A stretch of DNA of 64,000 nt, from assembly GCA_025594325.1 (NCBI GenBank), contig JANHCV010000009.1, positions 992,001-1,056,000 of the forward strand, given 5' to 3'. The stretch is from Blastocladiella emersonii ATCC 22665. Its lineage: Eukaryota > Fungi > Blastocladiomycota. The position numbers were made by a program, and so were the translations under genes. Positions 9,833 through 61,786 of the stretch are shown here, piece by piece. Numbering within the stretch: position 1 is the stretch's first letter; every line of letters begins with the position of its first letter. Under the pieces are notes generated by a model that ran no database searches, was not told the DNA's origin, and saw nothing but the letters and a program-made list of their open reading frames with translations.

Positions 9833-10339
9833 TCATTTCGACTCGCCGCGCGCAGTTTGGGTGACTCGGTGGGCCTGCGGCGCTCCTGCCCGAGGCTCGG
9901 AGACGGAGAAAAGTATCTCGCGCGCGTCACGTGATAAATCGACGCGTCTCACAGGTTTCGAAACGCGTCGCGACGCGGCCTTCGCGTCAGCTGAGACGTC
10001 TGAAATGTCCAGAAAGCGACGTAGGTTATCGAAACCACTGTCCATTACCTCAAATAGGGTCTTGCGCGGCCCGCGTGGCCACGTCCGTTCACAAGCGAAA
10101 CTTGCGCAGTCGGCCATGACTTGGCTAAGCGAGGAAGAGGTGTACGCAGGGGTTGAATTACTGCGGTTCGAGTCTTTCGCCAGCTTGTCAACGAGCTTGC
10201 GCAGTCGCTCCAGGTCATTCGTTTTGATGACAGACAGGAAGTTGGGGTCCACGGCTGCCACCTGCTGAGATGCATTCGAGCGAAGGGGGCGCAGCGGCCG
10301 CGCAGGGCCGTGCGCCTGACCTGCTTGAGCAGGTAGCAT
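9833..10339 (-). CDS. Orphan family member 1 (HxxxxPxR...K signature)
   Basis: ORF from MLPAQAGQAH. Its 44-aa block HGPARPLRPLRSNASQQVAAVDPNFLSVIKTNDLERLRKLVDKL aligns ungapped to three other ORFs in the window. The 3' end may be degenerate because it overlaps the motif at 9927. Confidence 0.55.
   Translation of the reverse strand: MLPAQAGQAHGPARPLRPLRSNASQQVAAVDPNFLSVIKTNDLERLRKLVDKLAKDSNRSNSTPAYTSSSLSQVMADCASFACERTWPRGPRKTLFEVMDSGFDNLRRFLDISDVSADAKAASRRVSKPVRRVDLSRDAREILFSVSEPRAGAPQAHRVTQTARGESK
9927..9950 (+). repeat. Island motif copy: TCACGTG-ATAAATCG-ACGCGTCTC
   Basis: Exact match to TCACRTG-N8-ACGCGTCTC. Confidence 0.85.
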
Positions 10340-10931
10340 TGTGGGCAGCTGTTGGTGAACGGATACCGAGTGGAGAGGAGGAGGAGGAATGATTGCTAGC
10401 GGGCGACTAACGCGTTGTGGTGTTTGCTCCCCCACAACGAGCCTACTTGTATGCACACATCACTCGTACGCACGCACGCACGCACTAGAGTCATGCGCCG
10501 TGTGCATATCAGGTTCGCAAATCCCTTGCTCGATGAATGATTGAGCCTGCATCACTCGCTGCATCACTAGTTCGCGCGGCTCCGACGTCCCGTCGCAACG
10601 TTTGGCTCCCTGAACACGGTGGTTCCCGCTCCAGGCGGTCGCATTTTGTTGTTCCAAGCTGGCAAGGCCGTGGGCCTCAAGTTTTGGAGCGCGAAAATCG
10701 CGCGCGTTGAGCCACACCCGCACACAGAGGTCACTAACCAGTGACCAAGGTGCGATCCTTCTTATAAGAAGGATCGCACATGAACTGCTAGCCATAATAC
10801 GATTGATGTCTTGCCTGATGTAGCCACAATCAACTGCTCTATCACCACGAGCGTGAAGTGGTTATCGAGGCCGTAGTCTCAAGCCTCCGACTTGTAGTTT
10901 AGGACGAACGTTGGGACGCGTCACGCGCGCG

Positions 10932-10955
10932 GCGTGTGGTAAATCGACGCGTCTC
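10932..10955 (+). repeat. Island motif, partial copy: GCGTGTG-GTAAATCG-ACGCGTCTC
   Basis: Shares 17 exact bases (TAAATCGACGCGTCTCA) with the 9927 copy. The heptamer is degenerate. Confidence 0.6.
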
Positions 10956-11222
10956 AACCGTCCCGGCCACCTGAGGTCTCACAATCGTAGCAGCAAGGAC
11001 CTGAAGGCGTCATCTTTGCTCACTCATTTCGAGAACGTGCTCAAGTTCCATCGATCAATCTGTCTATTGCCCAGAAATTATATTCTACCCGCTCGTGGTG
11101 CCGAATCACGACTTAGATCAGGAGCCCGAGCGCTGCAACCACGCCCATGATCGACGAGGTCAGGTAGACGGCGTTCGTCCCCGCAGAACTACTTGGCGAA
11201 CCGGTAGGGTCTCGCTTGGGCA

Positions 11223-12667
11223 TCACGCCGTTGGCCACGGGCGTCGTGGCCAGCGACTCGACGGCTGCGGGAGCCGTGAAGCTCGCGGGATCCAGCTTGT
11301 CGACCCTAAAGGAGTTGCAAAACGTGAGTTCACTGCTCGATCGCTCGGCTCAACGCAATTAGAGCCGCGTCGAACGTACCAGCGGAAGTTGAGCGAACCG
11401 TCAATCTGCGTCTCGATCTTGAGCAGGTTGATGACCTTGCGCGGCCAGCTCGCAGGCATCATCTTGGTCCCGCCGAGGACCACGATCGTCTGTCCAAGCA
11501 CCAGCGCCGTCGGGCTCTCGACAGCGAGCGGACCCATGTCGGGGTTCAGCACGATGCCCGCGGTCGCGGTGAGCGTGCGATCGCGCACGTACGTGACGAG
11601 CGAGCGGGCGCCGCGTCCGCCGAAATAGATGTCGTAGCGCGTGTCGTTGACGCCAACGTACGTGACGGCGGCGGGATCGCGGCCGACCGAACGCAGGTCG
11701 CCACGAACCAGCAGGTTACCCCGGCGCGTGTTGGCGGACTGCGGCGAGTACGACCACACCTGCGTCGGGAACTCTTCTAGCCGCAGCTTGACCTCGGCCT
11801 TTTCGTCGCGGCCCGACCAGAACATAGTACCGCCCGCCGCGTCGATGGCGCGGATCATGGGCACGCTCGGGTTGAAGGTGTCCGTGTACTTGACCTCGCC
11901 GAACTGGAGGTGTGGGGGTCGCGAAAAGTTAGCTACTGGCCGCTTCGATGCGGCGTCAATGTAGAAATGTGTACCTCATTGATGGTCGCGACCGGGGTCG
12001 TCTTGTTCACGTTGATGTTCAAGTCGAGGTTGGTGGTCGTAAACCCGCCGGTGCGGTTACGCGCGAGCCCGCCCATCACGAACGCCGTCGGGCGCATCGC
12101 GCCGGGCACCGTGTCCGAGAGGACCACGACGCGCGCCGGGTACAGCGGCATCGACGCGTTCTTGGTGCCCGTCGTGAGCTTGGCCTGGACGCTGGCCGAA
12201 TCGGCCGCGGTCGCAGGGAACTCGTACTCGAAGACCTGCGTGTTGGGCACGTTGACGGCCGAGTTGCCGCCCGCGAGCAGCACGCGGTACGGGTCGCTCG
12301 GCGACGGCTGCGACATGAGCGGCACGAGGTTGGCGACGCCCACGGCGCCGAGCGACGGCTGCATGGTGACGATGGAGGGCTCGGGGCCCGACTTGGCGAG
12401 GTCGAGCGGCTTGGAGAAGTCGAGCGGCTTGGAGAAGTCGAGCGAGAAGACGGTCGACAGCGGGCGGCCCGTCACGTTCGCGGCCGCGCCCGCGGGAACG
12501 GTCTCGCCGCCGTACACGGTCGCCAGCTTGAGACGCGACATGTACGTCACGGCGACGCCACGGAACCCGTTGGTGGTCTCGGCAGGCCACGGGCCGGCGG
12601 TGGCGGGCGCCGCGACGAGAGCGATCCAGAGCACGGCGAGCAGGGACACGAGGGAGATGGATCGCAT
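11223..12667 (-). CDS. Secreted protein with Kelch-like beta-propeller character (2 exons)
   Basis: Signal peptide MRSISLVSLLAVLWIALVAAPATA and repeated hydrophobic-GG motifs (VYGG, LLAGG, FVMGG, IYFGG, VVLGG). Intron at about 11911-11971. An 18-bp tandem duplication encodes FSKPLD twice. Confidence 0.6.
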
Positions 12668-13547
12668 TGCTGTGGAAGTCGTCAAGGCGATGTTAAGTCA
12701 AATTAGGGGAGAGGCGGGCATAACAGATTTTATAGTCGTGGAAACAGGCTCGTTCTGACCATGTTCTAGGCGAGCGCAAGGGTAGTGCGGCCGACGGCCC
12801 CAGGTGTTCGAGCTCAGACACTCGATCAACCGAACAAGATTCCAGAAAATCTCGACTGGCTGCGTCACGGCACCAGGGTAGGGTCCCTCCTCATCGCCGG
12901 ACACGCGACGTTTTGCGATCCATGAAGCCGGTGGAGCCGGAGTCTGCAGCTTACACGCCCATCAGACTTTGATCAGATGGTGCTCTGGCCCGAGTGTCGA
13001 TGCGTGCTGCTGACCATCCATCGCGATGAAACTAAACCGCCGTTGGGTGATCGTAGCGCCGGCGCAAGGCGAAATGACCGCATGGGTCCACGCGGGCCAC
13101 CTCGACGCGTAGTGCCGAGCGGCTGGACGAGTATCTGAGTCCAAGGGTTGCGTGAGTCGACGGGCCGAGTGGCGCGTCGCGTGCCATCGAGGGTGTGGCG
13201 GCGCATCGCGCCCATCCCGATCACAGTTCAAAAGCGGTGGCTCCTCCAAGGCTTCGAGCAGGCGAAGCGAAGGGAGTACGCGATCGGCTCACTTTCCGGA
13301 TCTCAAGCTCCGGAACTTCACGACCTCCTCAAATCTCAAGTTGACGCTGAACCCTCCCTCAGAATGATACGGGCGCTGCGTTTGTCCGAGGGGTGATGAT
13401 CGCTGGCTTGATGGCAACGAACGCGATGGGGCTTCGAGTTTTGTCCCGTCAGCCGTGAGAGTAGGTAGCGTGTCAGGCCACGTCGATCATGCAGGGACCG
13501 CAAGCGGTTGCTCGCGGTGATCAGCGTCGAAACGCGTCCCACAGCTA

Positions 13548-13571
13548 TCACGTGATTGTTCGACGCGTCGT
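13548..13571 (+). repeat. Island motif copy: TCACGTG-ATTGTTCG-ACGCGTCGT
   Basis: Two mismatches at the 3' end. Preceded by TGATCAG and a second AAACGCGTCCC, as in the 16242 copy. Confidence 0.75.
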
Positions 13572-13599
13572 CGCGTCGCCTCTGGCGGAGGCCGCGCGG

Positions 13600-13818
13600 A
13601 GGCCGCGCGGAGCAAGGATGCCCAGCGTCCCGTAAGCCGGTGCCGAGGATGTATGTATCAGCTGCTGCAACCTGCTGTCTGACGCGATGCAAACATGGAG
13701 CGAGCCTAACGCCGAGGCTTTGACACGACTCGCCCTGCCCTACGGTTCGCAGGACCTGCCACTCGACTAGCTTCACTTCAACCTCGCACACGTTCCTCTC
13801 GAACGCGTAAGCGCACAT
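13600..13818 (-). pseudogene. Possible relic of the MATH-like/BTB family (pre-BTB segment)
   Basis: YAFERNVCEVEVKL aligns with WSYERYGCRVEIKI of the 51038 BTB protein. No BTB core follows. Confidence 0.25.
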
Positions 13819-14252
13819 AGAACCGACTCTTCGGCATCTGTACCCCCCAATTCTCGCTCATCCTCGCCGCCATGTCGCGTGGCTACTTGCTCGCGATCGT
13901 GGTCGTGGTCGAGAGAGCAAGGTGGATCGGCGGCCCATCATGTCGTTGAGAGCTTTCAAATTTGATCCATGTGGGCCAGCAACGTGGTCGCACCAGCGAG
14001 AGCTGCGGAGCTGCGGAGCTGTCCGCCGATTCATGCGACCCGCCGTTGCCCTTTGGGGCGACGAAGAACGGAAACTCCGTGCCCCCTTCCCTCCCCTTTC
14101 GGGGCGTCCAGCAGCTGTCTAGGTCGGCACGAGGTTGGGGCTCGAGCAGCTCAGCTCGGAGCGTGGTGCGCCTCCCCCTTGCTGCGCTGGATCGCGGTTG
14201 CGCCGCGGCGCTCCTCGGCGTCAACACAACCGTCTCTAGACCCGCGGCCGCG

Positions 14253-16087
14253 ATGCAGTACCCGCCGACGCCGCTCCTGTCGCCCGAGTTCACGCCGAAG
14301 AAAGAGCGGCCGTCGAAGATCAAGGCGACGCACTCGCGGCCGGCGAAGAAGCGGATCTCGAAGCTGGTCCTCCCGCCCGGCTCGCTCGACGAGCACCTGG
14401 AGGATGTGGCCGCCGCAATCCAGCCGACGCCGCGCCAGGAGCGGCTCGCGCACGAGTGCACCGATCTCGTCGCCGACTACGTGCTGCGCTCGCTCCAGGC
14501 CGCGCTGCCGAAGCTCGAAGCGACCCGTGCCGCCCGTGTCGGCTCGCTGCACAAGAAGACGGCCATCCACTTCTCGTTCGACGTCGACCGCGTGTTCATG
14601 ATGAGCAACTTCAACCCGACGACGCGCCATCTCGAGGACACGCTCGTCGTCATCGAGCGCGCGCTCGCGCTCGCGGCCGACCCGCCGCGCTACTGGCCCG
14701 TTGACGACGGGCTCGTCATGTGGGTCGCCGACGTCAAGAGGCGCGCCAACAGTATCGCGTGCACCGTGTACGCCGGCCCGCTCAACCTCGAGTTCGACGA
14801 GAGCGACGGCGGCGTGCGGCACGCGGGCGCCGCCGTGCCCGCCTTCAAGGTCAAGCTCGACCTGCTGTGCGCGACCGAGGTCGTCGCGGACCCGGACCAC
14901 CGCATGACGCGGCGCGGGACCGCCGCGCAGGTCGAGTCGCTCCGCCACGTTCTGTCGACCAACGAGACCGTGTCCAAGTCGCTGCACCGCCTGTACCAGC
15001 CGCTCGTGTCCGAGGCCACGGTCGAGACGGTGCTGCGCGAGCCCGACGTCGTGCGCAAGCTGATCCGCATCCTCAAGCTGTGGGGAATGCTCGTCTTCTC
15101 GAGCAGCGCGACCGCCATGTCCAAGTCGACCATCTTCGAGAACCTCGCCGTCTACGCGGTCCGCGAGTACGCGTACGACCGCCGCGAGCTCACGCTCGAG
15201 GCGCTCGCCATCAAGGTGATCCGCTATATCGCCAACCTGGACAAGCTGCAGCTCGGCGGGACCCGCAAGGACAGGCCTGCGGCGGCTTATGTATTGCACA
15301 TGGTATGTTTTCACTCACCTGAACGTCTCCCACTGGCTGGCCTCTAACGACCCGCGACCTCGTCGTCGTCGTCTAGTGTGACGAGTCTAACAACCTGACG
15401 CGCACCGACGACTCGCGCGTGTTCTCGGTCGAGTACCAGGGCGACCTCAAGCACGCGGCCGAGTCGCTCCTCCCCGACACCCCCGCGGCGTTCTGGCTCA
15501 TGGCGTACCCGCAGGACAAGCGGCTGATCACGACCACGCTCATGTTCCTGCGCATCCGCGTGCTCGACGCGACGTGCGCGACCACGCCGATGCCCGGGTT
15601 CTGGCACCTCGACAAGCGGTTTGAGGAGATCGGCATGCACCACCAGATTGCCGCCCTCGTCACGGTCGCCCTCACGCTGCAGGACTGGATCCGCGGCGCG
15701 CTGTGCGCCGCCGTCGGCGATACGGCCAAGGCCGTGATCCAAGGTATGGAGCAGTACCTCGACTCGGAGTACACGCTCGACTGCACGCCGGGATCGCCGT
15801 ACTCGACGGACGACGGGCGCACCGCGCTCCGCTCGGTCGCCGAGACTACCGTGCAGCTGCTCCAGCGGCTCGTCGGGTTCACCAAGCGCGCCGAGGCGTA
15901 CGACGACACGACCCAGTTCGACGGGTTTGCGGTCGTGATCCCCGTCGTACCCGACGTCGTCTCGCTACACGTCGAGGTCCGGTGCCCCGTCGTCGACACG
16001 CACAAAAACCTCAAGGAGGTCGCTGAGGATGCGATCGAGGAGGAGAACAGGCGCGAGAGGATTGAGGCGCGCAGGAACGGCGTTTAG
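14253..16087 (+). CDS. 2'-5'-oligoadenylate synthetase (OAS)-like nucleotidyltransferase with an extra C-terminal domain (exons 14253-15302 and 15377-16087, 586 aa)
   Basis: GSLHKKTAIHFSFDVDRVFMMS has the same spacing as OAS [22 protein letters not shown]. Also a third Asp in KLDLL, VRKLIRILKLW (cf. LKSLIRLVKHW), IFENLAVYAVRE (cf. YALELLTIYAWE), YVLHMCDESNNL (cf. VILDPADPTGNL) and N-terminal PGSLDEHLED (cf. AKSLDKFIED). The phase-0 GT..AG intron keeps the frame. Confidence 0.82.
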
Positions 16088-16241
16088 AGAAGATGATACC
16101 GCGGCGTGTGGTGAAAATGTAAATAAGATCCAATATACCTCGCTGATTGTGCATACATGAACTCGGTCACTGTTCCTCTACGTTGTCGGCCAGGGGTGGG
16201 CCAGCCTGATCAGGCTGATCAGAAAACGCGTCTCGCACCCG

Positions 16242-16265
16242 TCACGTGTTATCGAAACGCGTCTC
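16242..16265 (+). repeat. Island motif copy: TCACGTG-TTATCGAA-ACGCGTCTC
   Basis: Exact consensus match. It lies between two convergent 3' ends and is preceded by the 16-bp palindrome CAGCCTGATCAGGCTG (16202-16217). Confidence 0.85.
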
Positions 16266-16336
16266 ACACGCTTGAACCGCGCGTGCGAGCGCCCCTGCTC
16301 AAATTCTTTGGCTCTACGTGTTAAATCAGGGAGTTT

Positions 16337-17353
16337 TCAATTATACAGCTCTACCAACGCGTTACTCGGCGCATTGAAGCTAGCCAACATCTTCTGCGCA
16401 ACAGCCACAAGCTCGCGACAGTCGATCCGCTGCGCAAACTCGACCAGTTCGGTCGCCTGGCTCGCGTCCTTGATGACCGGATCCACGCCGACCGACTCGA
16501 AAAACTGGTGAATTGCATGGGGAACCGGCTCGCCGGGCACCCAGCCCGAGTACACGTAGGCAAGGACCATTGCAAAGGGCGCCATTGGCCACGACAGCTT
16601 GATCGGCTGTCCTTCGCTGATCCGCTTCGCCCAAGCTCCTCGGATCAGCGCGGCGAAACCGGGCTGGGTGCTGAGAATGAGCTTCGCCGCGTACACGACC
16701 GTGATCATGGGCGGCGAGTGGCTCACGCGAACGTGGAAGCACAGGTCGCAGCGTGCCGGGTTGTTGAGCTTGCTGGTAATGACCGTTGATGCCCACCACG
16801 GGAGCCGCTGCTCGACTACCGGGTGCAGGAACTTGATTACAACGCGGCGAAGTCCCGTTTCGAACAAGCTCGCGACCGTGGTCTCGACGAACACGGCGCT
16901 GTGTAGCGTCAAGCACGCCCGCTCGCCGGAATTTGGGATCTGACAGCTCGCAGTAGGCGTCGGAGCGCTGAACAGCGCGTCGCGACAAGCGGGGAACGGA
17001 AGGCTGATAGAACACTCGATCGCACTCGTCACGCGGGCCACGGCGATGCTGACCTCGGCCGTCTCGTTGAAGGCGCCAGGTCGGACGAGTACGGAGAAGC
17101 TCTTGAACGGCAAGTGGGCCGGCGCGCTACACACGTCCGAGGCGAAGCCGCGGCTCAGATCCGAGCTGCGCGCGAGCGACTCGGCGTGCTTGCGTTGAGC
17201 GAACAATGTGAACCTTGGAGCGCCTGCCGACGCGACATCGGACGACTGCCCTGGTTCCGCGGGTGGGATGGTAGAGAAGGTGAACGTCGTCGCGATCGCA
17301 TCAACAGCTACGAGCGGCGGGCCAAGGCGAACCTGCGCCGTGAACGCTCGCAT
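16337..17353 (-). CDS. BTB/POZ-domain protein with an uncharacterised N-terminal beta-rich region
   Basis: LNNPARCDLCF...VYAAKLILSTQPGFAALIRGAWA...PIKL...FAMVLAYVYSGWVP is homologous to the 39114 and 51038 proteins. The start is uncertain. Confidence 0.7.
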   Translation of the reverse strand: MRAFTAQVRLGPPLVAVDAIATTFTFSTIPPAEPGQSSDVASAGAPRFTLFAQRKHAESLARSSDLSRGFASDVCSAPAHLPFKSFSVLVRPGAFNETAEVSIAVARVTSAIECSISLPFPACRDALFSAPTPTASCQIPNSGERACLTLHSAVFVETTVASLFETGLRRVVIKFLHPVVEQRLPWWASTVITSKLNNPARCDLCFHVRVSHSPPMITVVYAAKLILSTQPGFAALIRGAWAKRISEGQPIKLSWPMAPFAMVLAYVYSGWVPGEPVPHAIHQFFESVGVDPVIKDASQATELVEFAQRIDCRELVAVAQKMLASFNAPSNALVELYN

Positions 17354-17626: not shown

Positions 17627-17650
17627 GAGACGCGTCGGTCTATCATGTGA
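17627..17650 (-). repeat. Island motif copy (inverted): TCACATG-ATAGACCG-ACGCGTCTC
   Basis: Exact consensus match on the minus strand. Inverted relative to the 16242 copy. Confidence 0.85.
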
Positions 17651-17710: not shown

Positions 17711-18951
17711 TTACGCAATAACATCATCAAACAAAATCTTCATGAGCTCGCCGACAAGCTGCGCGTTGAGGCTGTTGCCGAGGAGGCGGTACTGCTGCGC
17801 GCGCGAGACGGACTTGGGGAAGGTGAGCGAGTCGGGGAAGCAGTGCAGGCGCGCGACCTCGGCGGGCGAGAAGAAACGCGGGCGCAGCTGGACCATGCGG
17901 TCCACGTCGCTGATCAGCTGCGAGCCGCCGGCGGGCAGCAGCTCCGAGACGAGGAACGAGCCGGATCCGAAGATGTGGCGCGACCCGTACGCCTTGGTGA
18001 AGGTCGACGAGCGCGTCGCGTTCGAGGAGACGACGTCTACACGGGAGGGGCGGGGTGTGAGAGTCGGGGGTTTGGGGAAAGGGGTGAGGAGAGATGAAGC
18101 GGACCGAAGTTGAACTTGTGCGACTTGCGGATCCACGCTTCGGGCACGAGGCACGTCTCGTCCACTTCCACGTCGAAGTACGACGAGAGCGCGGCGACCT
18201 CGACTGCCGGGTTGTCGGAGGAAGTAGGAGAAGAGGAGGGCGACCACACGACGGGCCAGGTGGTCTGGATCACGCCGCGCTCCGAGTAGAGCGGTGTGGG
18301 CTCCGACTCGGCCTCGTCCGCAGCCACCGGGGCCGCCGGCAGGTCGTCGGCCCGGCGACGAGCCATGAGAAAGTATCGTAGTCGGGCGTTCGGGATGCCG
18401 AGGTGGGTTGGCTCGAGGAGACACTCCGCGATCGCGTACCCGCGCCTGTCGAGGGCGTCGACGAGGATGCGGCGGCACTCGCTCGTCTCAAAGTTCTTGA
18501 CATTCTCGAGGAACAGGTACCGCGGCGGGACCGCCATGCGCTCGAGCAGCGCGACGAGGTGCAGCAGGCCGCGGCTGCGGTCGTCCTCGTGGTCGAGGCA
18601 CTTGCCGCCGCGCGTGAACGGCTGGCACGGCGGCGACAGGAACCAGGCGTTGGCACGGTACCGTTCCACGTCGGCGAGCGACAGGTGCTCGATGGACGCG
18701 GTGCTCAGCGCCGTCGCGGGGAAGTTGTGCGCGTACACGGTGTTGGCGACCTGGTTGACGTCGTACGCGGCGACCACGTCGCCGGGCGCACCGGTGTGCT
18801 TGAAGCCATAGTGCTACGGGCGGAGTCGGGGTTGGGGTCAGGACTTGGCCGAGTCGAGCCGCGCAGGGAGCGAGCCCGGCCGTACCAGGCCGCCGATCCC
18901 GGAAAAGAACTCAATGGCGCGGATCTCCGTGTTGGTGTTGCTGCTAGTCAT
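17711..18951 (-). CDS. DNMT2: DNMT2/TRDMT1 tRNA (cytosine-38-C5)-methyltransferase
   Basis: Motif I EFFSGIGG, motif IV SPPCQPFTR, motif VI LENV, CFT/SSTFTKAY region and motif X QQYRLLGNSLN. Two introns. Confidence 0.95.
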
Positions 18952-36834: not shown

Positions 36835-37392
36835 TCATATATACGGTGCGGGAGCGGCAGGGGCCGCGAGAGGGAACTTGCGCGGACGTTTTCTCCGAAA
36901 CATGGCCTTGATGCGCGCGCGACTTCGGTTGATCATCAACCAATGCGGCGGTTGGAACAACCAGCGACCAGCCTGTGGAAGTTGAGCCGAGGAAATGGTG
37001 TCGTGGGCCGGACCAACTCCTGTGAGCGATTCGGAGGACGCGCTACACAGCGAGGCTGCATATGTCGTTGACAAATTGGCAGTGCTGAACAGTTGCTCGA
37101 CATTAGGTTTGGAGGTGAGACTCGATGGCGGGCGTACGAGCGGAAGCAACAGCTCCAGATGACCGACGAGGTCGGTCATGCTTGGGTCAAGAGCGAAGAA
37201 CGGCGTGCCGGTCAGGCTGACGGCCGCGCTGCGCGTGAACTGAAGCAAGGACAAACAGGCATCATTTGGGACCACCAACAGCTTGTCTTGATTTACCGCT
37301 GGATTCTTGCTGGCCGATACTTTGACAGGCCTGAGAGCGGAACCGCCATCACGGCCATTTGTGGGACGAGGCGTCCCAGGTTCGTTACTCAT
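36835..37392 (-). CDS. Orphan family member 5 (tandem paralog of 37798-38286)
   Basis: AVSLTGTPFFALDPSMTDLVGHLELLLPLVRPP aligns ungapped with TLTLTGEPYPIKCPTVEQFVASFHVLLPLLEAP (11 of 33 identical). Confidence 0.5.
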   Translation of the reverse strand: MSNEPGTPRPTNGRDGGSALRPVKVSASKNPAVNQDKLLVVPNDACLSLLQFTRSAAVSLTGTPFFALDPSMTDLVGHLELLLPLVRPPSSLTSKPNVEQLFSTANLSTTYAASLCSASSESLTGVGPAHDTISSAQLPQAGRWLFQPPHWLMINRSRARIKAMFRRKRPRKFPLAAPAAPAPYI

Positions 37393-37797: not shown

Positions 37798-38286
37798 TCA
37801 TCCCCTATACACCTTGGACCTCGCCAGGATTCGGGCAGCAATTTGTTCCTTGTGCGCGTAATCCACAGACAGTTCCCGTTGAACTGCAGTGACAGGTACC
37901 TCGGGAACGTATATCCATGTTCCCCACAGTCCCCAGCGAGAGAACGTGGTCACCTCCGTCACAGGGTTTCGATCTTGTGGCACGGGTGCCTCGAGGAGCG
38001 GCAGCAAAACGTGAAAGCTCGCGACGAACTGTTCCACAGTCGGACATTTAATCGGGTAGGGTTCGCCAGTGAGAGTCAGAGTGAAGTGTTTAACCAGCTT
38101 GTACAGCCTCTGATAATCAGAGTCCTTGGCCAGCACGTTGATTCCTTCAGCCAGCGCAGGGCTGAGATGCGTCGAGGTCCCTTGGACGTTCCGAACCGGC
38201 TTTGCGGCCTTGTGAGCGCGTCTTTGCTTCTGGGTGATGGTTTTGTGCGCAAGGGGAAGCGGTGCCTGCGAGGACGCCGATGACAT
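37798..38286 (-). CDS. Orphan family member 2
   Basis: Signature block HKAAKPVRNVQGTSTHLSPALAEGINVLAKDSDYQRLYKLVKHF. An alternative upstream ATG lies at 38415. Confidence 0.55.
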   Translation of the reverse strand: MSSASSQAPLPLAHKTITQKQRRAHKAAKPVRNVQGTSTHLSPALAEGINVLAKDSDYQRLYKLVKHFTLTLTGEPYPIKCPTVEQFVASFHVLLPLLEAPVPQDRNPVTEVTTFSRWGLWGTWIYVPEVPVTAVQRELSVDYAHKEQIAARILARSKVYRG

Positions 38287-38756
38287 TCTGTGTGACGAGT
38301 CGGGCGCTGGAAGTCTCGAAACCGCCGTGTCTCGGGGCCAGAAGGTAAAGTACCTGTTGAGAATATGGAATGGAAAGCCCGACGGGTGCGATGTCTTCGG
38401 GCGAGGAGCGGCCATGAGCGAACAGTAATATGAATAACGCGAGCAGGGAGAACCAATGAATCTTTACGCCGGGTCGTGGTTTGGCCAGCTGAGCCAACGG
38501 CTCTACTTAATGTTCTGCTGCCACAAGTGCATATATCAGTCTCGCAGTAATGCGGTTGGTTTTGAGCAATGCGCGAGACGTCACTGCACTTCAACAGCGG
38601 CGTGATTCTGGACTAGCTCACGCCTGCGACACCCATATCGCACGCGAAGTAAATGAGCACGAATGACCAACATGTACGTCGGTCGTAATGCTAATTTTTG
38701 CGCAGCTTCCGGTGGCCTACATGCACTCACGTTGCTAAACCTAGTGTCGGCTTATG

Positions 38757-38780
38757 CAAGACGTGATGGAAATCACGTGA
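38757..38780 (-). repeat. Island motif, degenerate copy: TCACGTG-ATTTCCAT-CACGTCTTG
   Basis: The heptamer is exact and the spacer resembles that of the 40436 copy (ATTTCCCA). The nonamer is degraded. Confidence 0.45.
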
Positions 38781-39113: not shown

Positions 39114-40121
39114 CTACGCTTCCTCGACAGACGCAATCGGCGGCTCAGGTTCTGCTTCCGACTCGAGTGTTTGGGCCTCAAACGACCGGATCGCGCTGTC
39201 GATACGCTCGTCCAGTGCGCGCACAATGCAAGGGCGCAGGGCCTTCATAAGGTCGGCACACTCAAGCATCTGAGCCAAGTTGAGGCACTTGGTCAGGACG
39301 TCAAAGTGTTTGAGCTCCTCGATGTCGGTTCCAAACTTGGTGAAGATGCCAGCAATCTCGACAGGAGGTTCCATTACAGTCGGGACCCAGCCAGTGTACA
39401 AGTGCGCGAGCGCTAGAAGAAACTCCGGGAGGCCCCACTCGGTCATTGAAATCGGTTCCTTGGCGGCGGCGGATTCAGCCCAGTTGCCGCAAAACATGGT
39501 GGTAAAGAAGGCAGACCGTGCGCCCAGGATCGAGCGCGAAGCGTGAATAGGCTTGGTGGTGTCGCCGGCGATGAATGACACGTCGCACAAGTTTTGATTT
39601 CCAAGCGTCGAAAGCAAAGTGAAGTCCATGTTGAGTTTCTGGGACATGGCGGTAGTTGAAGGAGTGTCACTCACGGTAACACGCAGCTGTACGCCGTACG
39701 CATACGAAGGCATGACCATGTCCATGAATGTCCCGTAGACCGAATCAAGTTGGCACGGGTGAACAAGGACGGTACATTGACCCTCGTCACGGTACGTTGC
39801 GCAAACTGTAATTTTGACCTCGAAAGTGCGGGTAATTTCATCCAACGGAAAGAGTGTCAGAGTAACCGCCACGGTATTCTCGCGAAACCCGCGGTAGAAG
39901 GTGAGAAAGAATGTTCCGCTTCCAATTGTTGGTGGAAGTGATGCAGAAGTCGACCTAAAGCCATTTGTAATCTTTGTGTTGCTGCCCGAAACGTTTTTGA
40001 ACGTGTAGACGTGACCGCTTTCAGCGGTATCAAACCAAACAAATTCGAAGGCAGTCTAAAAGAACCGTTGTGAGCGGCATCCAGTGCGAGTGCTGACTGA
40101 AGTACATGCAGGCAGATCCAT
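39114..40121 (-). CDS. MATH-like + BTB/POZ protein
   Basis: BTB core LGNQNLCDVSFIAGD...IHASRSILGARSAFFTTMFCGNWAES...EPI...HLYTGWVP. The frame stays open upstream to a TTTTAG acceptor, with a short first exon MDLPA at 40121. Confidence 0.8.
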
Positions 40122-40383: not shown

Positions 40384-40419
40384 GTGCGAGACGGCGTGCG
40401 AGACGGCGTGCGAGACGGC
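40384..40419. repeat. (GTGCGAGACGGC)3 12-bp tandem array next to an island motif
   Basis: Three exact units. Each contains GAGACG, the reverse complement of part of the motif nonamer. Confidence 0.9.
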
Positions 40420-40435
40420 GCGCGCCTGGGCGTGC

Positions 40436-40459
40436 GAGACGCGTTGGGAAATCATGTGA
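40436..40459 (-). repeat. Island motif copy (inverted): TCACATG-ATTTCCCA-ACGCGTCTC
   Basis: Exact consensus match on the minus strand, about 310 bp upstream of the BTB gene. Confidence 0.85.
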
Positions 40460-48328: not shown

Positions 48329-48361
<33 letters not shown>

Positions 48362-50669: not shown

Positions 50670-50693
50670 TCACATGATATCGCGTCGCGTCTC
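50670..50693 (+). repeat. Island motif copy: TCACATG-ATATCGCG-TCGCGTCTC
   Basis: One mismatch to the consensus, preceded by TGATCAG. Inverted partner of the 52225 copy. Confidence 0.75.
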
Positions 50694-51037: not shown

Positions 51038-52040
51038 CTAAGCAGCGGGCTTGATCGAGATCGCGTTGATGCGGGTGCTGATCGCGTCCACGATCTTAGG
51101 CTTCAGCGCCGTCATGAGCTTCGGGCACTCGAGCATTTCTGCAAGGTCGAGGCAATTGACAAGAACGTCATAGTGATAAAGTTCAGCGAGCTTGACCTCG
51201 AGCTTGGCGAATGCTGCTGTAATCGGCTTGGGTGCAGCGTCAGGACCAGGGACCCAGCCCGTGTACAGGTTGACGATCGCAAGCGCGAAAGCGGCACGTT
51301 GCCAAGCGGGCAGCGCGATGGGCTCCTTGGCAGCTGCCGAATCCGCCCAGTCGCCTCCAAACATCGAGGCAAAGAAAGGCGAGCGTGAAGAGAGAATAGC
51401 AAGCGAAGCAGCGATCGGTGTGGAGGTGGATGCTCCTGGAAGGAGGCTTACATCACAAATTGCAGGATTTCCAAGCGATGATAGAAGCGTGTCATCCGCA
51501 GCTGAAATAGGGGCGGTGAGCAGGTCGGTTTGACTAAACTTAATCTTGATCTCGACACGACAACCGTAGCGCTCGTACGACCACCAGGAGATCGGTGCAA
51601 CATAGAAAACAACTCCCTGCTCTTTACGAATTAAGCAGGACATGGCTGTAAGCTTTTCAGGATTCGACATGTGCATAATTTGGGCACTGCAAATCAAGTC
51701 GACTGGCAATTGGGTGCCGTTGAATGGCTGGAGCATCACGCTCATCTCCCACACGCTTGATGCAAACGATGGCCGGAAGCCGATTATAAAGCTTCCCCCG
51801 CCAAACTTGGGGTGGAAATCGGTTTGTTTGGTTTTAAAGCCGTGTTCGGTTGCATCACTTGAAACGCAGAGGTCCTCGTACGTGTAGCTGACTGATTTGG
51901 CATCCTCCTCGATCTTAGCTTGCTGGGCAAGCACCTGATTTACGTGAGCGTCAGCGAGGTTTTGGTTACATGAGCTTCTGCCAACTTGCATACTATAATT
52001 TTTGTCATTGCTGAGACGCCTCTTTTGCGTCGGTTTCATG
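51038..52040 (-). CDS. MATH-like + BTB/POZ protein
   Basis: LGNPAICDVSLLPG...IAASLAILSSRSPFFASMFGGDWADSAAAKEPI...NLYTGWVP, closely parallel to the 39114 protein. The N-terminal region also aligns (HGFKT...FGGGSFIIGF vs NGFRS...IGSGTFFLTF). Confidence 0.82.
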
Positions 52041-52224
52041 AAGGCGGAGGGAAAGTGGAACACGCGCTGTTTTGCCCCTTTATCTATCCGAGAGCAGACA
52101 TGGAAGCAAACTGGACAGTACCTCGACCTCAGGCTGACAAGCTCGTTTGTACGCTCAACCGCGGAACGTGATAGATTTTTCAGAATTCGCGTGTTCATGT
52201 GTCTCGCGCTGACCACGTGGGCGT

Positions 52225-52248
52225 GAGACGCGTTTCGATATCACGTGA
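52225..52248 (-). repeat. Island motif copy (inverted): TCACGTG-ATATCGAA-ACGCGTCTC
   Basis: Exact consensus match, 23 of 24 identical to the 16242 copy. Confidence 0.88.
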
Positions 52249-52360: not shown

Positions 52361-52639
52361 CTACCTCAGCCGCGGACACGCTGGATGCGGCTCTCCTGAC
52401 ACCAAGCGCGTCACCAGCTTGGACTTGAGCGCGTCCAGCCAGAGCAAGAGGTGAATGAGAACGACGACAAGGGCATGGCGGGTCCACTCGTGAAGCTTGA
52501 TGGGCGCGTTTGACTTGATGGAGTCGGTCCAGCCGCCGCGAAACATGGCAGCAAAGAAGGGCGAACGGGATAAGAGAATTGCGCGCGAAGCGTGGAAGGG
52601 CGAAGTCGAGTCGCCCGCGAGGAACGAGACGTCGCACAC
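52361..52639 (-). pseudogene. Truncated BTB/POZ gene fragment
   Basis: CDVSFLAGDSTSPFHASRAILLSRSPFFAAMFRGGWTDS is present, but the TGWVP segment and the N-terminal region are missing. Confidence 0.75.
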
Positions 52640-52962
52640 GGCCGGATCTTTGAGCGCGTCAAGTCAAGTCGTGCCGATGCGCGAAGGAGCGGGGATGGTG
52701 ACGGTCATGGGGGGGGGGGCGAGACGACGTGGACCGAGGCAACGATCCAATCAACCCGAAATGGGTCGCTCTCCACGTTTTGGAAGCGCGGATCAACCGC
52801 CTGCAACCACACAATGGCTCACATCATAGCAGCCCCTGCAAAAGAACCAAGGTGGGTTTTTTTGTGCGTGGAGAGCGCTTTGCACAGGCTCAGCAGTGAC
52901 CCCGCATCTCCTGTCGGAGTGAGCGACCGCTTCCTGACTGGCTCAATGATGTCTCGCACGTG

Positions 52963-52986
52963 TCACGTGATTGTTTGACGCGTCTC
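52963..52986 (+). repeat. Island motif copy: TCACGTG-ATTGTTTG-ACGCGTCTC
   Basis: Exact consensus match. The upstream GTCTCGCACxxG is shared with the 16242 copy. Confidence 0.85.
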
Positions 52987-53311: not shown

Positions 53312-54043
53312 ATGGCAACCACCAGGACTCCGACTCCTCTACAAGTTCATAACAGTGCACAGCCAGTCCGAAAAGTTCGGGACACGCATAATCAGCAGAA
53401 GACCAGCTTCCATCCCGGATGCGAGGTTCTGGTGAAACGCTCCAACCTCGTTCGCATCACTTCGCTCGCTCACAAGCTTTTCAAGTGCGTCGATATCGAC
53501 ATCCGGATTCCTGCGTCGCGAACCGCCTACTCGAACGCGGAATTCGTCAAGGTCACCAACTCGCTTGAGAAAATGCTCACGGCTTTGTTGGCCCTGCGCT
53601 TCTGGGCTCCCATTGGTCCACTCACGGCCTCGGGTCCATCAGCGTCTGGCAAGCTGGTCACGGAGGACGACGAGACGGACGATGACGAAACCGAAGCCCA
53701 GGAGGAAGATGAGCCCGAAGCTAATGAGGAGATGGGGATCAGCCCAATTGAGCGCTACCTTTCGAAGTTGGACGCAATCCAAAGACGGATAACCGAGTAC
53801 GAGGTCAAGCGCATCCGTGCCATCACAGCTTCGCCCTGGGTAATGCGCACTTTTGGCATTGTCTTGCCAGCCACTCCTGTCCAACACACTCGCACCCAGA
53901 AACCTTTCCAGACCAAGACCCCCATACCCATTTTTTCGAGACAAATCTCGACGATACCGGTGCAATACATATATTATATACGATACCACACGACACGCTG
54001 CAATCCTGTGGCTAGCTACAAACTCGAGCTCAGCGACAGTTGA
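53312..54043 (+). CDS. Orphan family member 3, with an acidic tract
   Basis: Signature HNSAQPVRKVRDTHNQQKTSFHPGCEVLVKRSNLVRITSLAHKL. The unspliced ORF's stop codon falls inside the MITE TIR. Confidence 0.6.
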   Translation: MATTRTPTPLQVHNSAQPVRKVRDTHNQQKTSFHPGCEVLVKRSNLVRITSLAHKLFKCVDIDIRIPASRTAYSNAEFVKVTNSLEKMLTALLALRFWAPIGPLTASGPSASGKLVTEDDETDDDETEAQEEDEPEANEEMGISPIERYLSKLDAIQRRITEYEVKRIRAITASPWVMRTFGIVLPATPVQHTRTQKPFQTKTPIPIFSRQISTIPVQYIYYIRYHTTRCNPVASYKLELSDS

Positions 54044-54352
54044 AGTGGAGAGAGAGTGGATTAAAACGGGTGTGCCATGACACGGGTGTTATGCTCCAAC
54101 TCTCCCCCCCACTCGAGCTCCGAAACTTCTACGGAGAAGAATCACCACGGAACACGAGCGGCAACAAACGACTCCCAAACCTCTATGGAGAGGAATGACG
54201 ATGGAGGGCGCGCGGGAACGACGAATGGAAATGATAGTGCGCACAAGAGGAATCGATCTCAGGGCTCATAACCAGTTGAAGTGGAGAGAGAGTGGATTAA
54301 AACCCGTGTCATGGCACACCCGTTTTAATCCACCCTCTCTCCACTTCAACTG
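54037..54352. mobile_element. MITE-like element: 316 bp, 50-bp terminal inverted repeats, 3-bp CGA target-site duplication
   Basis: The left TIR CAGTTGAAGTGGAGAGAGAGTGGATTAAAACGGGTGTGCCATGACACGGG (54037-54086) matches the reverse complement of 54303-54352 at 49 of 50 positions. CGA flanks both ends (54034-54036 and 54353-54355). Confidence 0.88.
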
Positions 54353-54459: not shown

Positions 54460-54507
54460 GATCACGCGTCAGATCACGCGTCAGATCACGCGTCAGATCA
54501 CGCGTCA
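54460..54507. repeat. (GATCACGCGTCA)4 12-bp tandem array
   Basis: Four exact units, each containing ACGCGTC, about 50 bp before the motif at 54561. Confidence 0.92.
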
Positions 54508-54560
54508 GATCAGCGCGAGACTGCTTAAGGCTGCACTGCGAACATCAAAGGGCGAATAGC

Positions 54561-54584
54561 TCGCGTGTTTTCGCGACGCGTCTC
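54561..54584 (+). repeat. Island motif copy: TCGCGTG-TTTTCGCG-ACGCGTCTC
   Basis: One mismatch in the heptamer, with the 8-nt spacing preserved. Confidence 0.7.
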
Positions 54585-55042
54585 GCGTCAACCGGCGGCG
54601 TTGGTGTAGGGCAGTGTTTCAGCAAGCTCGATGAAACGCTGGAGACTCGCGCGACACGACGCGCGTGGCCCAGTTCCCCGGTTCAAGGCTTTACGGCTCC
54701 TCCATTCTCGTCCAACTCCCGACCGAAACAGCTACGGTTAGCGCCGAGGTACTGAAAGTGAGGCGATTCTTCGCGTGATTTCGTGGTACGACGCACTTGC
54801 CACGCATGTATCATCAGGCGGCAAAAGCCAATAGGTGGCCATCGACGCATGGAACGAGCGCGACGTGCGCTGCATTCAAGTTGAGCTCGAAAGCCGCAGC
54901 TTGTAAAGTGCTCCTGTCTCGCTCCCTCCAAATTCCACCCTTGAAATGAGTAGGCCTCGTAATGTCTCGACTAATTTTTTACCCGTAACTGCACTGGGTC
55001 CTAATACCCTTCGCCTGTGGCCTTGTAGCAGACCCGACTCTG

Positions 55043-56522: not shown

Positions 56523-57052
56523 ATGTCGACCAACGTCCCCACCACCTCCACCTCGGCGACCAAGCCGTTGCGCAAGCACCCGGAGCTCGCGTCGCAGTCG
56601 CACGAGCCGGCGCCGTCGCACCACGCGGGCCAGCAGCCGCACGCCGCCGTCGTCGGGTCCGTTCTCTCGCTGCGGCTCGGACTGATCACTACGCGCATCA
56701 CCGCTCACCCACGCGCACGCACGCACGCACCCTCGTAGCCACGCGAGCATGGCCGACCAGCGCCGCCAGGAGATGCGCGAGGACCTGACCGAGGAGCTCA
56801 TCAAGCACCAGTCGCACCCGCACCACAAGGCGTCGGGCCGCGCCCCGGGCGACCCCGCCTGGGCCGAGGGCGAGCACGTCGGCCTCGAGCAGGTGTCGAC
56901 GGTACGCTTCTCCCGCTGCTCGATCGCCTTTCGCGACACCGCGACTCACACTGCCCGTCGTGTAGACCCAGGTCCGCGAGGGCGAGCCGCCGATCGTCGG
57001 GCACGTCCAGGCCCTCGACGAGGCCGCCGCCGCCAGCAAGGGCCGCAAGTAA
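56523..57052 (+). CDS. Small hydrophilic protein of unknown function (3 exons)
   Basis: Host-like codon usage with GT..AG introns joining MSTNVPTT..., AMADQRRQEMREDLTEELIKH... and ...ALDEAAAASKGRK*. Confidence 0.55.
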
Positions 57053-57253
57053 GCGCCGCCGCTGCGGGTCGCCGTTCCTCGGCGCTGTCCGAGCAGAGTT
57101 TGTCAGTGTCATTGTCGTCGTAAGCAGATCAGTTTCTTCATCATTATCGCCCTGCCGTGTGCCCGCTCGGTGAGATGAGTCGATGAGCGCGAGACCCTGA
57201 ACGCGTCGCGCCGCAGCTGCTCGGCCGACGCCATCGCGACGAATGTGAATCCC

Positions 57254-60200
57254 ATGGAGCGCGCCAAACGACCGCACTCGGTGCAACAGCAACATGATGG
57301 TGAGCAGATTGAGGCCCCGCCAGCCGCCGCTGCGCGGGCGGGGTTCAAGATCCGCCGCACGGCCAAGAAGCCGCGCACACGAGCTGCTTCTGCCGCCGCA
57401 TCGGCGCAACCCGCCCCTCCGTCTTCCACCGCACCGACAGCGACGCCGCTGCCCGACTACCTCGCGTCGCTCGTCCCCGTGTTCGCCGCCATCAACACGA
57501 CCGCCACCTTCATGGCCGCGCGCGGCGTGCACCTGACGCTCGACCAGCTCAAGTCGGCGGTCGACGGCGCGACTGGTGGACAACCGCGGCCCTTTGACGT
57601 GACCGTGCTGCGCGAGCTGCTCGCCGTCGCGCCCAACCTCGTCGCCGCCGGGTGGGCCGACGAGCTCGGCCGCGGGTCGCAAGCCGCCAAACTCGACGAT
57701 CTCGCCGCCTCGCCGCTCCGTACGGTCCAGGCGGCGCAGCAGAGCGTCACGGTCGCGCTCGTCGGTGTGCCGCTCACGAGTGAGGCGGGGCCGGCAAAGT
57801 ACGCACGATGACGCGCGCGCTGGATCGAGTGCAAGGGGAAACTCACGACTATGCTTCGTGTGGTAGAAAAAAGGTCTCGGCCGCCAACGCGCTCAAGGCC
57901 ATGACCCGTGGTATCGAGGCGCGTAACGCCGCCTTTCGCGCTGCGCTCGACGCGTTCCACGCCGCGTGTATCGCCGAGGTACGGATCCTGGGATTCGGCG
58001 CGAGACTCTACGCCGACTCACCATCGCGCTGTAGAGCAAGGACCCGGCCGAGAGCCTCGCGGAACTCGCCTCGACGACGCTGCCCGACGTACCCGCACTC
58101 GATCGGCCGCGCCCGCTCCGCCTGACCGACACAGCCGGCGCAGCCTCAACCCCCGCTGCCCGCGACGTCGAGGCCAACAGCGAGACAAGCGACTCTGCCA
58201 TCGACATCCTGACCCTCGTCACGCGCGAGCGCTTCTACTACAACCAGCTCGTCGCGACGCACACAGTCCCAGCGCGCGCCGCGCGCTTCGGCACCTTCCC
58301 GCCGCGCCTGAGCGCCGGCCTGCGCACCGCGCTCGAGCGGTACAAGGGCATCCGCGAGCTGTACGCGCACCAGGCCGACGGCATCGACCGCGTGCTCGAC
58401 GGCGCGCACGTCATCGTCACCACGTCCACGTCGTCGGGCAAGTCGCTCGTCTACACGGTGCCGATGCTGCACGCGCTCGAGCACGACCGCCGCACCCGGT
58501 GCCTGTACCTGTGTCCGACCAAGGCGCTCGCGCAGGACCAGCTGCGCGGGATGCGTAGTTTGCTCAACGCGTGTGCGGGGCATCTCGAGGGCGTCGAGGT
58601 CGCGGCGTTTGACGGCGACACGCCGCAGGCCGACCGCGCGGGGATCCGAGCGAAGTCACAGATCCTCCTGTCGAACCCGGACATGCTCCACGTCACGATC
58701 CTGCCCAACGCGCACGAGTGGGCCGCGTGGCTCGCCCGGCTCAAGTACGTCGTCGTTGACGAGGCTCACGAGTACCATGGCGTGTTTGGTTCGCACGTAC
58801 GGTTTGTTTGGGTGAGCCGCGATTCCTGCGCACGCTGACCTAAAGCCCGGTACTGGCGTAGTGCGCGTGGATCTTTCGCCGGCTCCGCCGACTCGCCGCG
58901 CACTACGGCAACACGTCGCTGCAGTTCATCGCGTGCTCGGCGACCATCGCCAACCCGGTCCGTCACAATCCCTGTTCTACACCCGACTCGGACTAACTCG
59001 AACGCTCCCGCCACAGGTCGAGCACGCCCGCGCCCTGTTCGGTCTCGAGTTCGAGCACATCGGCGACGACGCGTCGCCCGCGGGCCGCCGCCTCATGGCC
59101 ATCTGGAACCCGCCGCTCGTCACGCAGCCCACCGTTCCGCGCAGTGATCCCGACGCTCCTGCACCGCCTGCAGCACCGCGCCGCGTCCCGCGCGTCTCGT
59201 CCGTGGCCGAAACCGCGCGCCTGTTCGTGTACCTCGTCGCGCGCGGCGTACGCACCGTCGCCTTCACCAAGTACCGCCAGGCGTGCGAGCTGCTGTTCAA
59301 GGAGGTGAGCGTGCTGCTCGCGGGGGACGCGGCGCTGCTCGACCGCGTGCGCAGCTACCGCGGCGGGTACCACCCCGAGGAGCGGCGCGTGATCGAGCGC
59401 GGGCTCGCGGCCGGCGAGTTTTGGGGGGTCGTTGCGACCAACGCGCTCGAGCTCGGGATCGATATTGGCGGGCTCGATGCGGTTTTGCATCTTGGGTTTC
59501 CTGGGCACGCGGCGCTGGTACTACTTCGTGTTCAATGACGTGTTCTGCTCGGCTCAAGCTAACTCACGTTGCCACTGAGTAGAAACAACAAGCTGGCCGC
59601 GCCGGCCGCCGCGCGCGCGACAGCGTGTCGGTGCTGATCCCCGAGGCGCACCCGCTCGACCAGTTCTTCGCGCGGCACCCGGACAAGGTGTTCTCGCCCG
59701 ACACCGAGCAGCACACGGTCGTCGACCCGTCCAACGAGGGCATCGCTGCCGCGCACCTGGCGTGCGCCGCGTTCGAGCTGCCCGTTCACGCGGCCGAACC
59801 GTGCTTCGGCGGGATCGAGTACGCGGACCTCGTCCCGCGTCACCTCGTCAGACACGAAGCGCAAGACGTGTACGAGTCACCCGTCTCCTTCCCCGCGCGC
59901 ACCGTCGCGATCCGGTCGATCCAGAACGACCAGTTCACGGTCGTCGACCGCACGCGGCCCGACCGCCACACGGTGCTCGAGTACCTCGAGGCCAGCCGCG
60001 CCGCATTCGCGCTGTATATTGGCGGCATCTTCCTCAACCAGGGCACCAGCTACCTCCTCACCGACGTCAACCCCGCCACGCTCGTCGCGGGGGTCCGCGC
60101 CACGGCGGCGAATTATTACACGAGCTGCCAGTACGTTTTCCGCGTGTGCGCGTTTGGGGTGCGGGACGAGAGCTGACTCGTGGTGCGCGGTCATGTAGGG

Positions 60201-61056
60201 ACATCACCAACATCGACCCTGTGCGCGACGTGGCGGCCAAGCGGCTGGGGCCTGTCGAGGTGCGCTTCGCCGAGGTCCAGGGTACCGAATCCTCTCGCCA
60301 CACGATCACTGTTACTCGCTCGTAGCTCACCTCAACCTCGCACCATCCAGTCACGACCCAGGTCTTCGGCTACCACAAGATCGACACCTCGACGCGCCGG
60401 ATCCTCGAGACGGTCGAGCTGACGACGCCCGCCATGGTCCGCCCCACGCGCGCCATGTACATGGACGTCCCGGCCGCCGCGGTCCGCAGCATGGGCGGGC
60501 CCGACCTCGCGTACGCGGCGATCCACGCGCTCAACCACGCGCTGCTCAACCTGCTCCCCGTCGCCGCGGTCCTTGGGTCCACCAACGAGGCCGGGTGCGA
60601 GTGCCGCGGAACCGATAACCGCCGGCCGCGCCCGTTCCGCGTCCTCGTCTACGACAAGCGCACGGGTGGCGTCGGGCTCGCGCGGCGGCTGTTCGAGACG
60701 TGCGCGCCGATGCTGCGGAACGCGGTCCGGCTGGTTGGAGAGTGTTTGTGCGACGACGGGTGTCCCGAGTGTACGTTTCGGTGTGGTGGTGGTGGACGTT
60801 GGTGGAGGGCTGACGTCGTGCGTGTGTGTGGCGTGTAGGCGTGCTCTGGAAACATTGCTCGCAGCAGAACGAGCTCATCAACAAGCGGCTCGCCGTCGTG
60901 CTCGCGCGGTATCTCCTCGGTGAGTCCGAACTGCAGAGTGAGACTGAGATGCAGGGTGAGCCGAGCGACGCGGTGGCTCAGTCCGAGGCAGAAGAAGAGC
61001 CTGGGGCTGTGGGCGACGACGATGTGGCTCAAAACGAGCCGTCGCTAGATGCGTGA
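57254..61056 (+). CDS. HRQ1: Hrq1/MrfA-type DEAH-box helicase with a C-terminal DUF1998 zinc site (multi-exon)
   Basis: [55 protein letters not shown], and C-terminal [10 protein letters not shown]...C. Confidence 0.93.
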
Positions 61057-61762
61057 TGAGGATCCGCTCAGAATGTATATTGGTTAAGCCGTTTGAGCAC
61101 AAGTCTTGGAGGTCGTGACAGAGCTTTCCCGAGAGCCAGTCAGCGAGAACCACAGGTCGGTCACGGTCAATCAATGAACGAGACACGAGCAGCGGATGTC
61201 CCTGGCGCCAGCGGAGCCGCGGAGTAGTCGCCGAGGTACGGCGATCGAGACGCGTACCCAGTACCGGCAGCAGCAGCGGACGGCGTCGCCCCAGGTGTGG
61301 TGCTGGTCGCCGCGAACGCTGAGCCCGGCGTCGAGTAGTCCGAGACCAAGAGCGAGGCCACGGACGTGGGCGCGAGGTGCGGCGACGTGTACGCGGCGCC
61401 GCCGTGGTGGCGGTTCGCGTGGTGAGCGCGGCGCCGGTGCTGCGACACGGACACGATGGACGGCGGCGGCGGTTGCATCGAGGCGGCGAGACGAACACGT
61501 GTGTGGCGCAGCGCGTTGTCACAATCCAGGCTTCGCGTCAAGCGCTGACAAGGCACGCTTGAATCGTGCCGTTAAGCATCACGTCAGTGACCTTTCAGCA
61601 CTACTGCGGTCGAATTAAAACCAGAATATGGCGAATATATCACTGCAAACCGGACCTCACACACATCAGATTTACCCTCAGCTCGACACGATCATCGATC
61701 AAGAATGAATGGCCAGATCATCAAACCCAACAGCGTTCACAATACGTCGGATGTGATTGATG

Positions 61763-61786
61763 TCGAGGTATAACTCAACGCGTCTC
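61763..61786 (+). repeat. Island motif, partial copy: TCGAGGT-ATAACTCA-ACGCGTCTC
   Basis: Exact nonamer and an AT-initiated spacer. The heptamer is degenerate. It lies about 90 bp beyond the stop of the 61878 ORF. Confidence 0.5.

Follow-up and report, generated by a model that had tools for sequence, protein, structure and literature searches.

The window analyzed here comprises 64,000 nucleotides of Blastocladiella emersonii ATCC 22665 (JANHCV010000009.1:992001-1056000, assembly GCA_025594325.1), and the element under study is a repeated motif, TCACRTG-N8-ACGCGTCTC, in which an E-box is followed at a set distance by a box with an ACGCGT core. The motif proved genuine, with fixed spacing, an intergenic location, and enrichment by gene class. 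It is probably a composite, rigidly spaced docking site for transcription factors that would serve a large and mainly lineage-specific set of genes. This reading was favored because the sites are intergenic only, their spacing is rigid, their flanks are not conserved, and they are enriched upstream of orphan genes and genes of a BTB family. An initial annotation, made from the sequence alone, had offered three readings (a composite regulatory site, an antisense promoter, or the end of a mobile cassette); the first of these was the best supported.

Composition and spacing of the motif

In the window, TCACRTG-N8-ACGCGTCTC was matched 10 times at no more than two mismatches, compared to an expectation of 0.28, and none of 100 shuffles reached 10 matches. 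The six exact copies (9927+, 16242+, 17627-, 40436-, 52225-, and 52963+) and the three copies with one or two mismatches (13548+, 50670+, and 54561+) that were listed in the initial annotation were all reproduced, and an overlapping inverted partner at 52213+ was added to them. Eight or nine of the 11 ACGCGTCTC words in the window, and seven of the nine TCACRTGA words, were located inside the composite. The two halves are thus coupled, and the motif was therefore treated as a single element, not as two independent boxes.

A divergent open reading frame (ORF) of the BTB family (51038-52216) was used as the query for further loci. Five were retrieved from B. emersonii (contigs 1, 9, 10, and 14), two from B. 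britannica, and one from Catenaria. The larger B. emersonii sample amounted to 205 kb from the four named contigs. The gap between the E-box and ACGCGT was 8 nt in 19 cases in this sample, and no other gap from 0 to 30 nt occurred more than four times; the constancy of the spacer, which had been claimed from the window, thus extended to the larger sample. A position weight matrix (PWM) was built from 15 sites, and the scan that the initial annotation had proposed for the whole genome was run on the 205 kb with a cut-off of at least 16 bits. It returned 26 sites, where 0.25 were expected, i.e. a density of ca. 0.13 per kb, or about one per 8 kb. Of the three partial copies listed earlier in the window, two were sustained (10932+ at 18.1 bits and 61763+ at 17.6 bits), but that at 38757- keeps the E-box half only.

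The PWM consensus was TCACRTGAT-(3-4 free nt)-TCGA-ACGCGTCTC, frequently extended by GCAC. The ACGCGT core was invariant among the sites, and the E-box core was either CACGTG or CACATG. The upstream TCTCGC extension noted previously was found in ca. six copies as GTCTCGC-N3/4-(G)TCACGTG; the additional GTCTCGCAC box is positioned 3-4 nt before the E-box there, giving a 31-nt direct repeat of GTCTCGC. For the GTGGCGCARCGCG upstream box alone, five occurrences were counted against 1.9 expected, and its enrichment was not clear. Two elaborations of the motif were also found. Symmetric double sites (CACGTG-N8-ACGCGT-N8-CACGTG) occurred between tandem BTB genes, and homotypic 12-nt tandem arrays of single boxes, GCCGTCTCGCAC and GATCACGCGTCA (4.8 copies each), adjoined two composite sites.

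Beyond the boxes the flanks were unrelated, with the shared sequence ending at ca. 35-45 bp. The motif therefore fits a selected binding site, not a repeat. The existence of spacer “subfamilies” was considered as proof of copying and was rejected as weak, because the spacer has a consensus of its own (GAT..TCGA) and only 3-4 free positions.

Placement relative to genes

All 26 PWM sites were located in annotated intergenic DNA. In ca. 108 kb of gene bodies, the sole match was a weak one with two mismatches; the annotated gene bodies of the window held no site, in line with the earlier statement that conserved genes contain none. The short intergenic regions between conserved genes were likewise devoid of sites. 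When a site was required within 1 kb upstream, 11 of 28 orphan or BTB genes and 2 of 34 Pfam-conserved genes carried one (odds ratio ca. 10, P=0.0017, in a sample biased by the choice of loci via BTB genes and by the greater length of the spacers upstream of orphan genes). The genes next to sites were members of the BTB family, orphans with no Pfam match, one GT22 glycosyltransferase gene, and one START gene. Many of the long, lower-GC stretches that bear sites are almost empty in the annotation, yet contain BTB-family ORFs.

The initial annotation had the motif marking every accessory island. This held inside the window but not elsewhere: ca. 12 of the 23 BTB homology blocks in the sample had no site, sites were missing from locus L009, despite its BTB gene, and from 3 kb of BTB sequence in L010, and the conserved GT22 gene was preceded by a perfect site. 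The BTB family itself is Blastocladiomycota-wide, fast-evolving, and common to B. britannica, Catenaria, and Allomyces. It forms tandem arrays (L005, 5.9-16.5 kb; L010, 7.2-13.3 kb; in the window, 16337-17353, 39114-39872, 51038-52198, and 52364-52663), and many copies are either missing from the NCBI annotation or cut to their last 108-127 aa.

Distances to start codons fell into several classes. In four annotated genes, the E-box end was nearest the ATG, at 88, 100, 110, and 145 nt; these were the 1779-aa gene of the window and, elsewhere, the GT22 gene (88 nt), a 228-aa gene, and a 67-aa gene. The ACGCGTCTC end was nearest, at 26-273 nt, for BTB ORFs 1 and 3 of the window (described below), a BTB gene of L011, and a 544-aa gene. 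Over the genes other than the first four, distances of 150-940 nt and the opposite orientation were recorded. Judged from sequence positions, this pattern fits a transcription-factor site that would work in either orientation better than it fits a strict core promoter.

The individual sites of the window are described from left to right; gene calls for most of it were those of NCBI. An exact site (9927-9950, plus strand, 35.7 bits) is found 194 nt after the stop codon of Mob1, at the edge of a low-GC stretch. It and the partial site at 10932-10955 (plus strand), in which the E-box is degenerate and the spacer and ACGCGTCTC are intact, both fall in the interval from the Mob1 stop (9733) to a 449-aa gene whose 3' end is at 11113. 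The two-mismatch site at 13548-13571 (plus strand) is located in the intergenic DNA that separates two divergent genes, the 449-aa gene and an annotated 586-aa gene (14253-16087). The latter had been called OAS-like, and neither of its exon ORFs had a Pfam match at E up to 0.01. An extended site at 16224-16265 (plus strand) is composed of a ACGCGTCTCGCAC box, the E-box, and a second ACGCGTCTC 31 nt past the first. Its composite core at 16242 is located between the convergent stops of the 586-aa gene (16087) and BTB ORF 1 (16337), confirming that copies occur in such positions.

BTB ORF 1 (16337-17353, minus strand; E 1e-12 to other BTB ORFs) is absent as an exact ORF from the NCBI annotation. 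It is flanked by the 16242+ site and by an exact site at 17627-17650 (minus strand), which is 273 nt before its ATG; given the placement of these two sites, BTB ORF 1 is bracketed by inward copies that can serve no other annotated gene. The site at 17627-17650 also follows, by 61 nt, the stop codon of a C5 cytosine DNA methyltransferase gene on the minus strand (17711-18777), whose PF00145 matches are in two ORFs of different frames, so that the gene contains an intron or a frameshift. The ORF 17742-18113 was considered as a target gene on the E-box side and was rejected as an antisense shadow of the methyltransferase gene.

The half site at 38757-38780 (minus strand) retains just the E-box and the spacer, and a GTGTGGCGCAACGCG box is present upstream of it. 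BTB ORF 2 (39114-39872, minus strand; PF00651, E 6e-9) is annotated over 127 aa only. The feature at 40384-40459 (minus strand) consists of an exact site (40436-40459), with its E-box end 110 nt upstream of the 1779-aa gene's ATG, and an adjoining tandem array of the GTCTCGCAC box (12 nt x 4.8; 40384-40441). At 50670-50693 (plus strand), a one-mismatch site is located 344 nt past the stop of BTB ORF 3 and 313 nt before the ATG of a 209-aa gene. BTB ORF 3 (51038-52198, minus strand; PF00651, E 3e-5) is annotated over its last 108 aa only. The symmetric double site at 52213-52248 precedes the ATG of BTB ORF 3 by 26 nt and follows a minus-strand BTB fragment (52364-52663) by 112 nt. An exact site at 52963-52986 (plus strand) is 326 nt before an orphan ORF (53312-54043). 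In the feature at 54460-54584 (plus strand), a 12-nt x 4.8 tandem array with an ACGCGTC-containing unit (54460-54517) is followed by a one-mismatch composite (54561-54584). The partial site at 61763-61786 (plus strand), with the ACGCGTCTC half only, is found where the last low-GC stretch begins.

Other features of these stretches were noted. A second family, of weakly related orphan ORFs (9833-10456, 36835-37392, 37798-38415, and 53312-54043; pairwise E 1e-4 to 2e-2), is present in the low-GC stretches; none of its members is annotated, and none had a convincing Pfam match. A MITE-like element (miniature inverted-repeat transposable element; 54037-54352) with 55-nt terminal inverted repeats (TIRs; 96% complementary) and an internal third arm adjoins the stop of the last of these ORFs. 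Its contig depth was ca. 4.5x that of the flanks in run X1, and it is therefore multi-copy in the genome. The G+C content of the window ranges from 55 to 74%; its dynein heavy chain gene is nearly intronless, with a third-position G+C (GC3) of 0.98, and its STT3 protein has 100% identity to the one of B. emersonii ATCC 22665. Rfam and tRNA scans of the window returned no matches.

Probable regulatory site and competing explanations

In the favored reading, the composite regulatory site would pair a Cbf1/USF-type E-box (TCACRTGAT) with an ACGCGT box, similar to the MluI cell-cycle box (MCB) and extended to ACGCGTCTCGCAC, exactly 8 nt away, and these would frequently be joined by the GTCTCGCAC box 3-4 nt on the opposite side of the E-box. 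A fixed protein assembly, made up of two cooperating factors or one multi-domain factor, would occupy ca. 24-35 bp of promoter-region DNA and turn on a large battery of genes comprising the BTB family, orphans, and a few conserved genes. The site would act in both orientations and in the symmetric double form as well, with the tightest class being that in which the E-box end is 88-145 nt before the ATG. We infer the protein binding, the activation, and any timing from the sequence.

Several observations weigh against this regulatory reading. The sites at 16242, 9927, and L010:1035 are located between annotated 3' ends and have no gene to serve. The density of sites per kb was similar in divergent, tandem, and convergent intergenic regions, not higher in divergent ones; the convergent regions that carry sites are unusually long and may hide unannotated genes. 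Finally, eight or nine of the 10 single sites beside BTB genes present the ACGCGTCTC end to the gene, at 5' and 3' positions alike, a bias not expected of a plain upstream activating site that is indifferent to orientation. A rival explanation is a boundary, insulator, or roadblock, in which a general DNA-binding factor at the edges of gene units, its orientation mattering, would block read-through or separate lineage-specific stretches, perhaps in the manner of the yeast general regulatory factors that act also at 3' ends. In favor of such a role are the sites between convergent stops and those that face a BTB gene from either end, and ca. 0.13 sites per kb is a high density for a specific regulon. 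In addition, by our own post hoc reading of a small count, the ACGCGTCTC end points to the interior at every one of the nine sites that border low-GC stretches. The orientation counts among BTB genes are likewise few and post hoc, a promoter at ca. 100 nt from the flanking gene explains five of the nine edge sites just as well, half of the BTB genes have no bracketing copies, and no site was found in the short housekeeping intergenic regions, where protection from read-through would matter most. A boundary function was considered unlikely. A more specific version of it, in which inward-facing copies would delimit fast-evolving, lineage-specific units (BTB arrays and orphans) and insulate them from the tightly packed conserved genes, was regarded as very unlikely; it would resemble the convergent-site logic of CTCF loop anchors, achieved via the very recent spread of a 24-35-bp site in one species of an early-diverging fungal lineage. 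The 3' copies might instead be antisense promoters, with the motif firing toward the ACGCGTCTC side, such that BTB ORFs 1 and 3 would be convergently transcribed and the resulting antisense or double-stranded RNA would tune or silence the BTB family. Inward copies 72-344 nt past the stops of four BTB genes are consistent with this idea, as is the same orientation 26-273 nt upstream of BTB genes. However, polarity is reversed in the best-defined promoter class, where it is the E-box end that is closest to the ATG, and most of the 3' copies are also upstream of a neighboring gene. The antisense explanation was considered improbable.

The third proposal, a gene-carrying mobile cassette whose end or recombination site the motif would be, appeared highly improbable, as did a variant in which a short dispersed mobile element spread the site and left it as a footprint. 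Two BTB ORFs are indeed flanked by inverted copies, the loci sampled from B. britannica and Catenaria yielded no copy of the motif (implying rapid spread), and L012 has two copies, separated by 2.1 kb, that agree at 34 of 35 nt although the DNA around them is unrelated. Nevertheless, no conserved sequence extends past the ca. 35-45 bp, and the interiors are unrelated. The paired copies are 1409 bp apart in one case and 1579 bp in the other. The bracketed proteins are only 30-48% identical even though the motifs are near-perfect, and paralogues at this level of identity keep or lack the motif independently. No target-site duplication was seen by eye at the 16242/17650 pair, the sole pair inspected. 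A 3858-nt contig spanning 50209-54066 crosses “cassette 2” in two runs with no alternative joints. Across four DNA runs from the source sample, no inversion or excision joint between paired sites appeared, although this test is weak, since rare forms are lost from contigs. The loose contig ends (52248, 52963-52984, and 54562-54588) resemble copies of the short motif from elsewhere in the genome. Among the ORFs of the stretch that were scanned, none had a recombinase or transposase domain, and 2.9 million viral contigs yielded one match. The idea of a viral promoter was dismissed on the same count, which gave no sign of viral origin.

The history of the motif was approached through relatives. 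The BTB loci of B. britannica (42 kb) and Catenaria (21 kb) had no site, where ca. five and ca. three would be expected from the density in B. emersonii, and showed no preferred gap between the boxes. The motif thus looks specific to B. emersonii within this limited sampling. In a search for sister-species synteny, a HAD protein retrieved itself only, and a BTB ORF had no match. Because the L012 copies are near-identical and the motif is absent from the sampled relatives, some copying process may have spread it. A recent inverted segmental duplication of ca. 9.3 kb was observed between L006 (JANHCV010000009.1:1382524-1403201) and L007 (JANHCV010000009.1:1348037-1368714). It has 0-1 mismatch per 400 nt and carries an amino-acid permease gene, a BTB gene, and a RibD_C gene; its ends do not coincide with the motif, and it is too recent to inform on conservation.

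Comparison with known systems

B. emersonii has served as a classic model of zoospore development and of phototaxis; to our knowledge, almost nothing is known of transcriptional control in Blastocladiomycota. The motif offers a handle for finding binding factors with a 35-bp probe and for defining a large regulon. It also allows one to ask how thousands of near-identical regulatory sites spread in one lineage, wiring up new genes. The analysis additionally flags many BTB-family genes that are unannotated at present. The genome paper describes an assembly of 21 contigs, with 23,370 expressed sequence tags mapped as a check (PMC9730499). No description of the motif was found in the literature searched, nor by a term search in that paper, which turned up no RNA-seq or transcriptome data either.

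Among known elements, the TIRs of DNA transposons and MITEs are similar in that inverted copies flank two genes here. They differ in that no target duplication was seen at the 16242/17650 pair, there is no conserved subterminal or internal sequence, and the bracketed genes are old paralogues; the genuine MITE of the window, with its 55-nt TIRs, looks quite different.

Long, lineage-specific core-promoter motifs are known in protists, e.g. the oomycete element that combines an initiator (INR) and a flanking promoter region (FPR). The present motif is likewise long, restricted to a species or clade, and near a large fraction of genes, and a subset of its copies is located 88-145 nt from the ATG. 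In contrast to those elements, it occurs in both orientations, at up to ca. 900 nt, and also 3' of genes.

The right half has the identical 6-bp palindromic core of the MCB, which is the site of MBF/SBF-type APSES/KilA-N factors of fungi, and it forms clusters and tandem arrays in promoter regions, as yeast MCBs do. SBF/MBF-type factors are reported to have entered the fungal lineage early (PMC4862756). The box here differs from the MCB in that it is lengthened to ACGCGTCTCGCAC and kept exactly 8 nt away from an E-box, and its neighbors are orphans and BTB genes, whereas MCB targets are G1/S replication and repair genes. Because the genes beside the motif are not G1/S genes, the likeness of CACGTG to a bHLH site and of ACGCGT to an MBF site is taken as a resemblance only.

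The left half may be compared with the Cbf1/USF-type E-box, for which the budding-yeast consensus, in centromere DNA element I (CDEI), is RTCACRTG. The sequence (G)TCACRTGA, with R being G or A, agrees with that consensus at every letter. It is distinguished from a Cbf1 site by its context, which is neither centromeric nor that of MET genes, and by the fact that the E-box is almost never alone here: in the window, seven of the nine occurrences belong to the composite.

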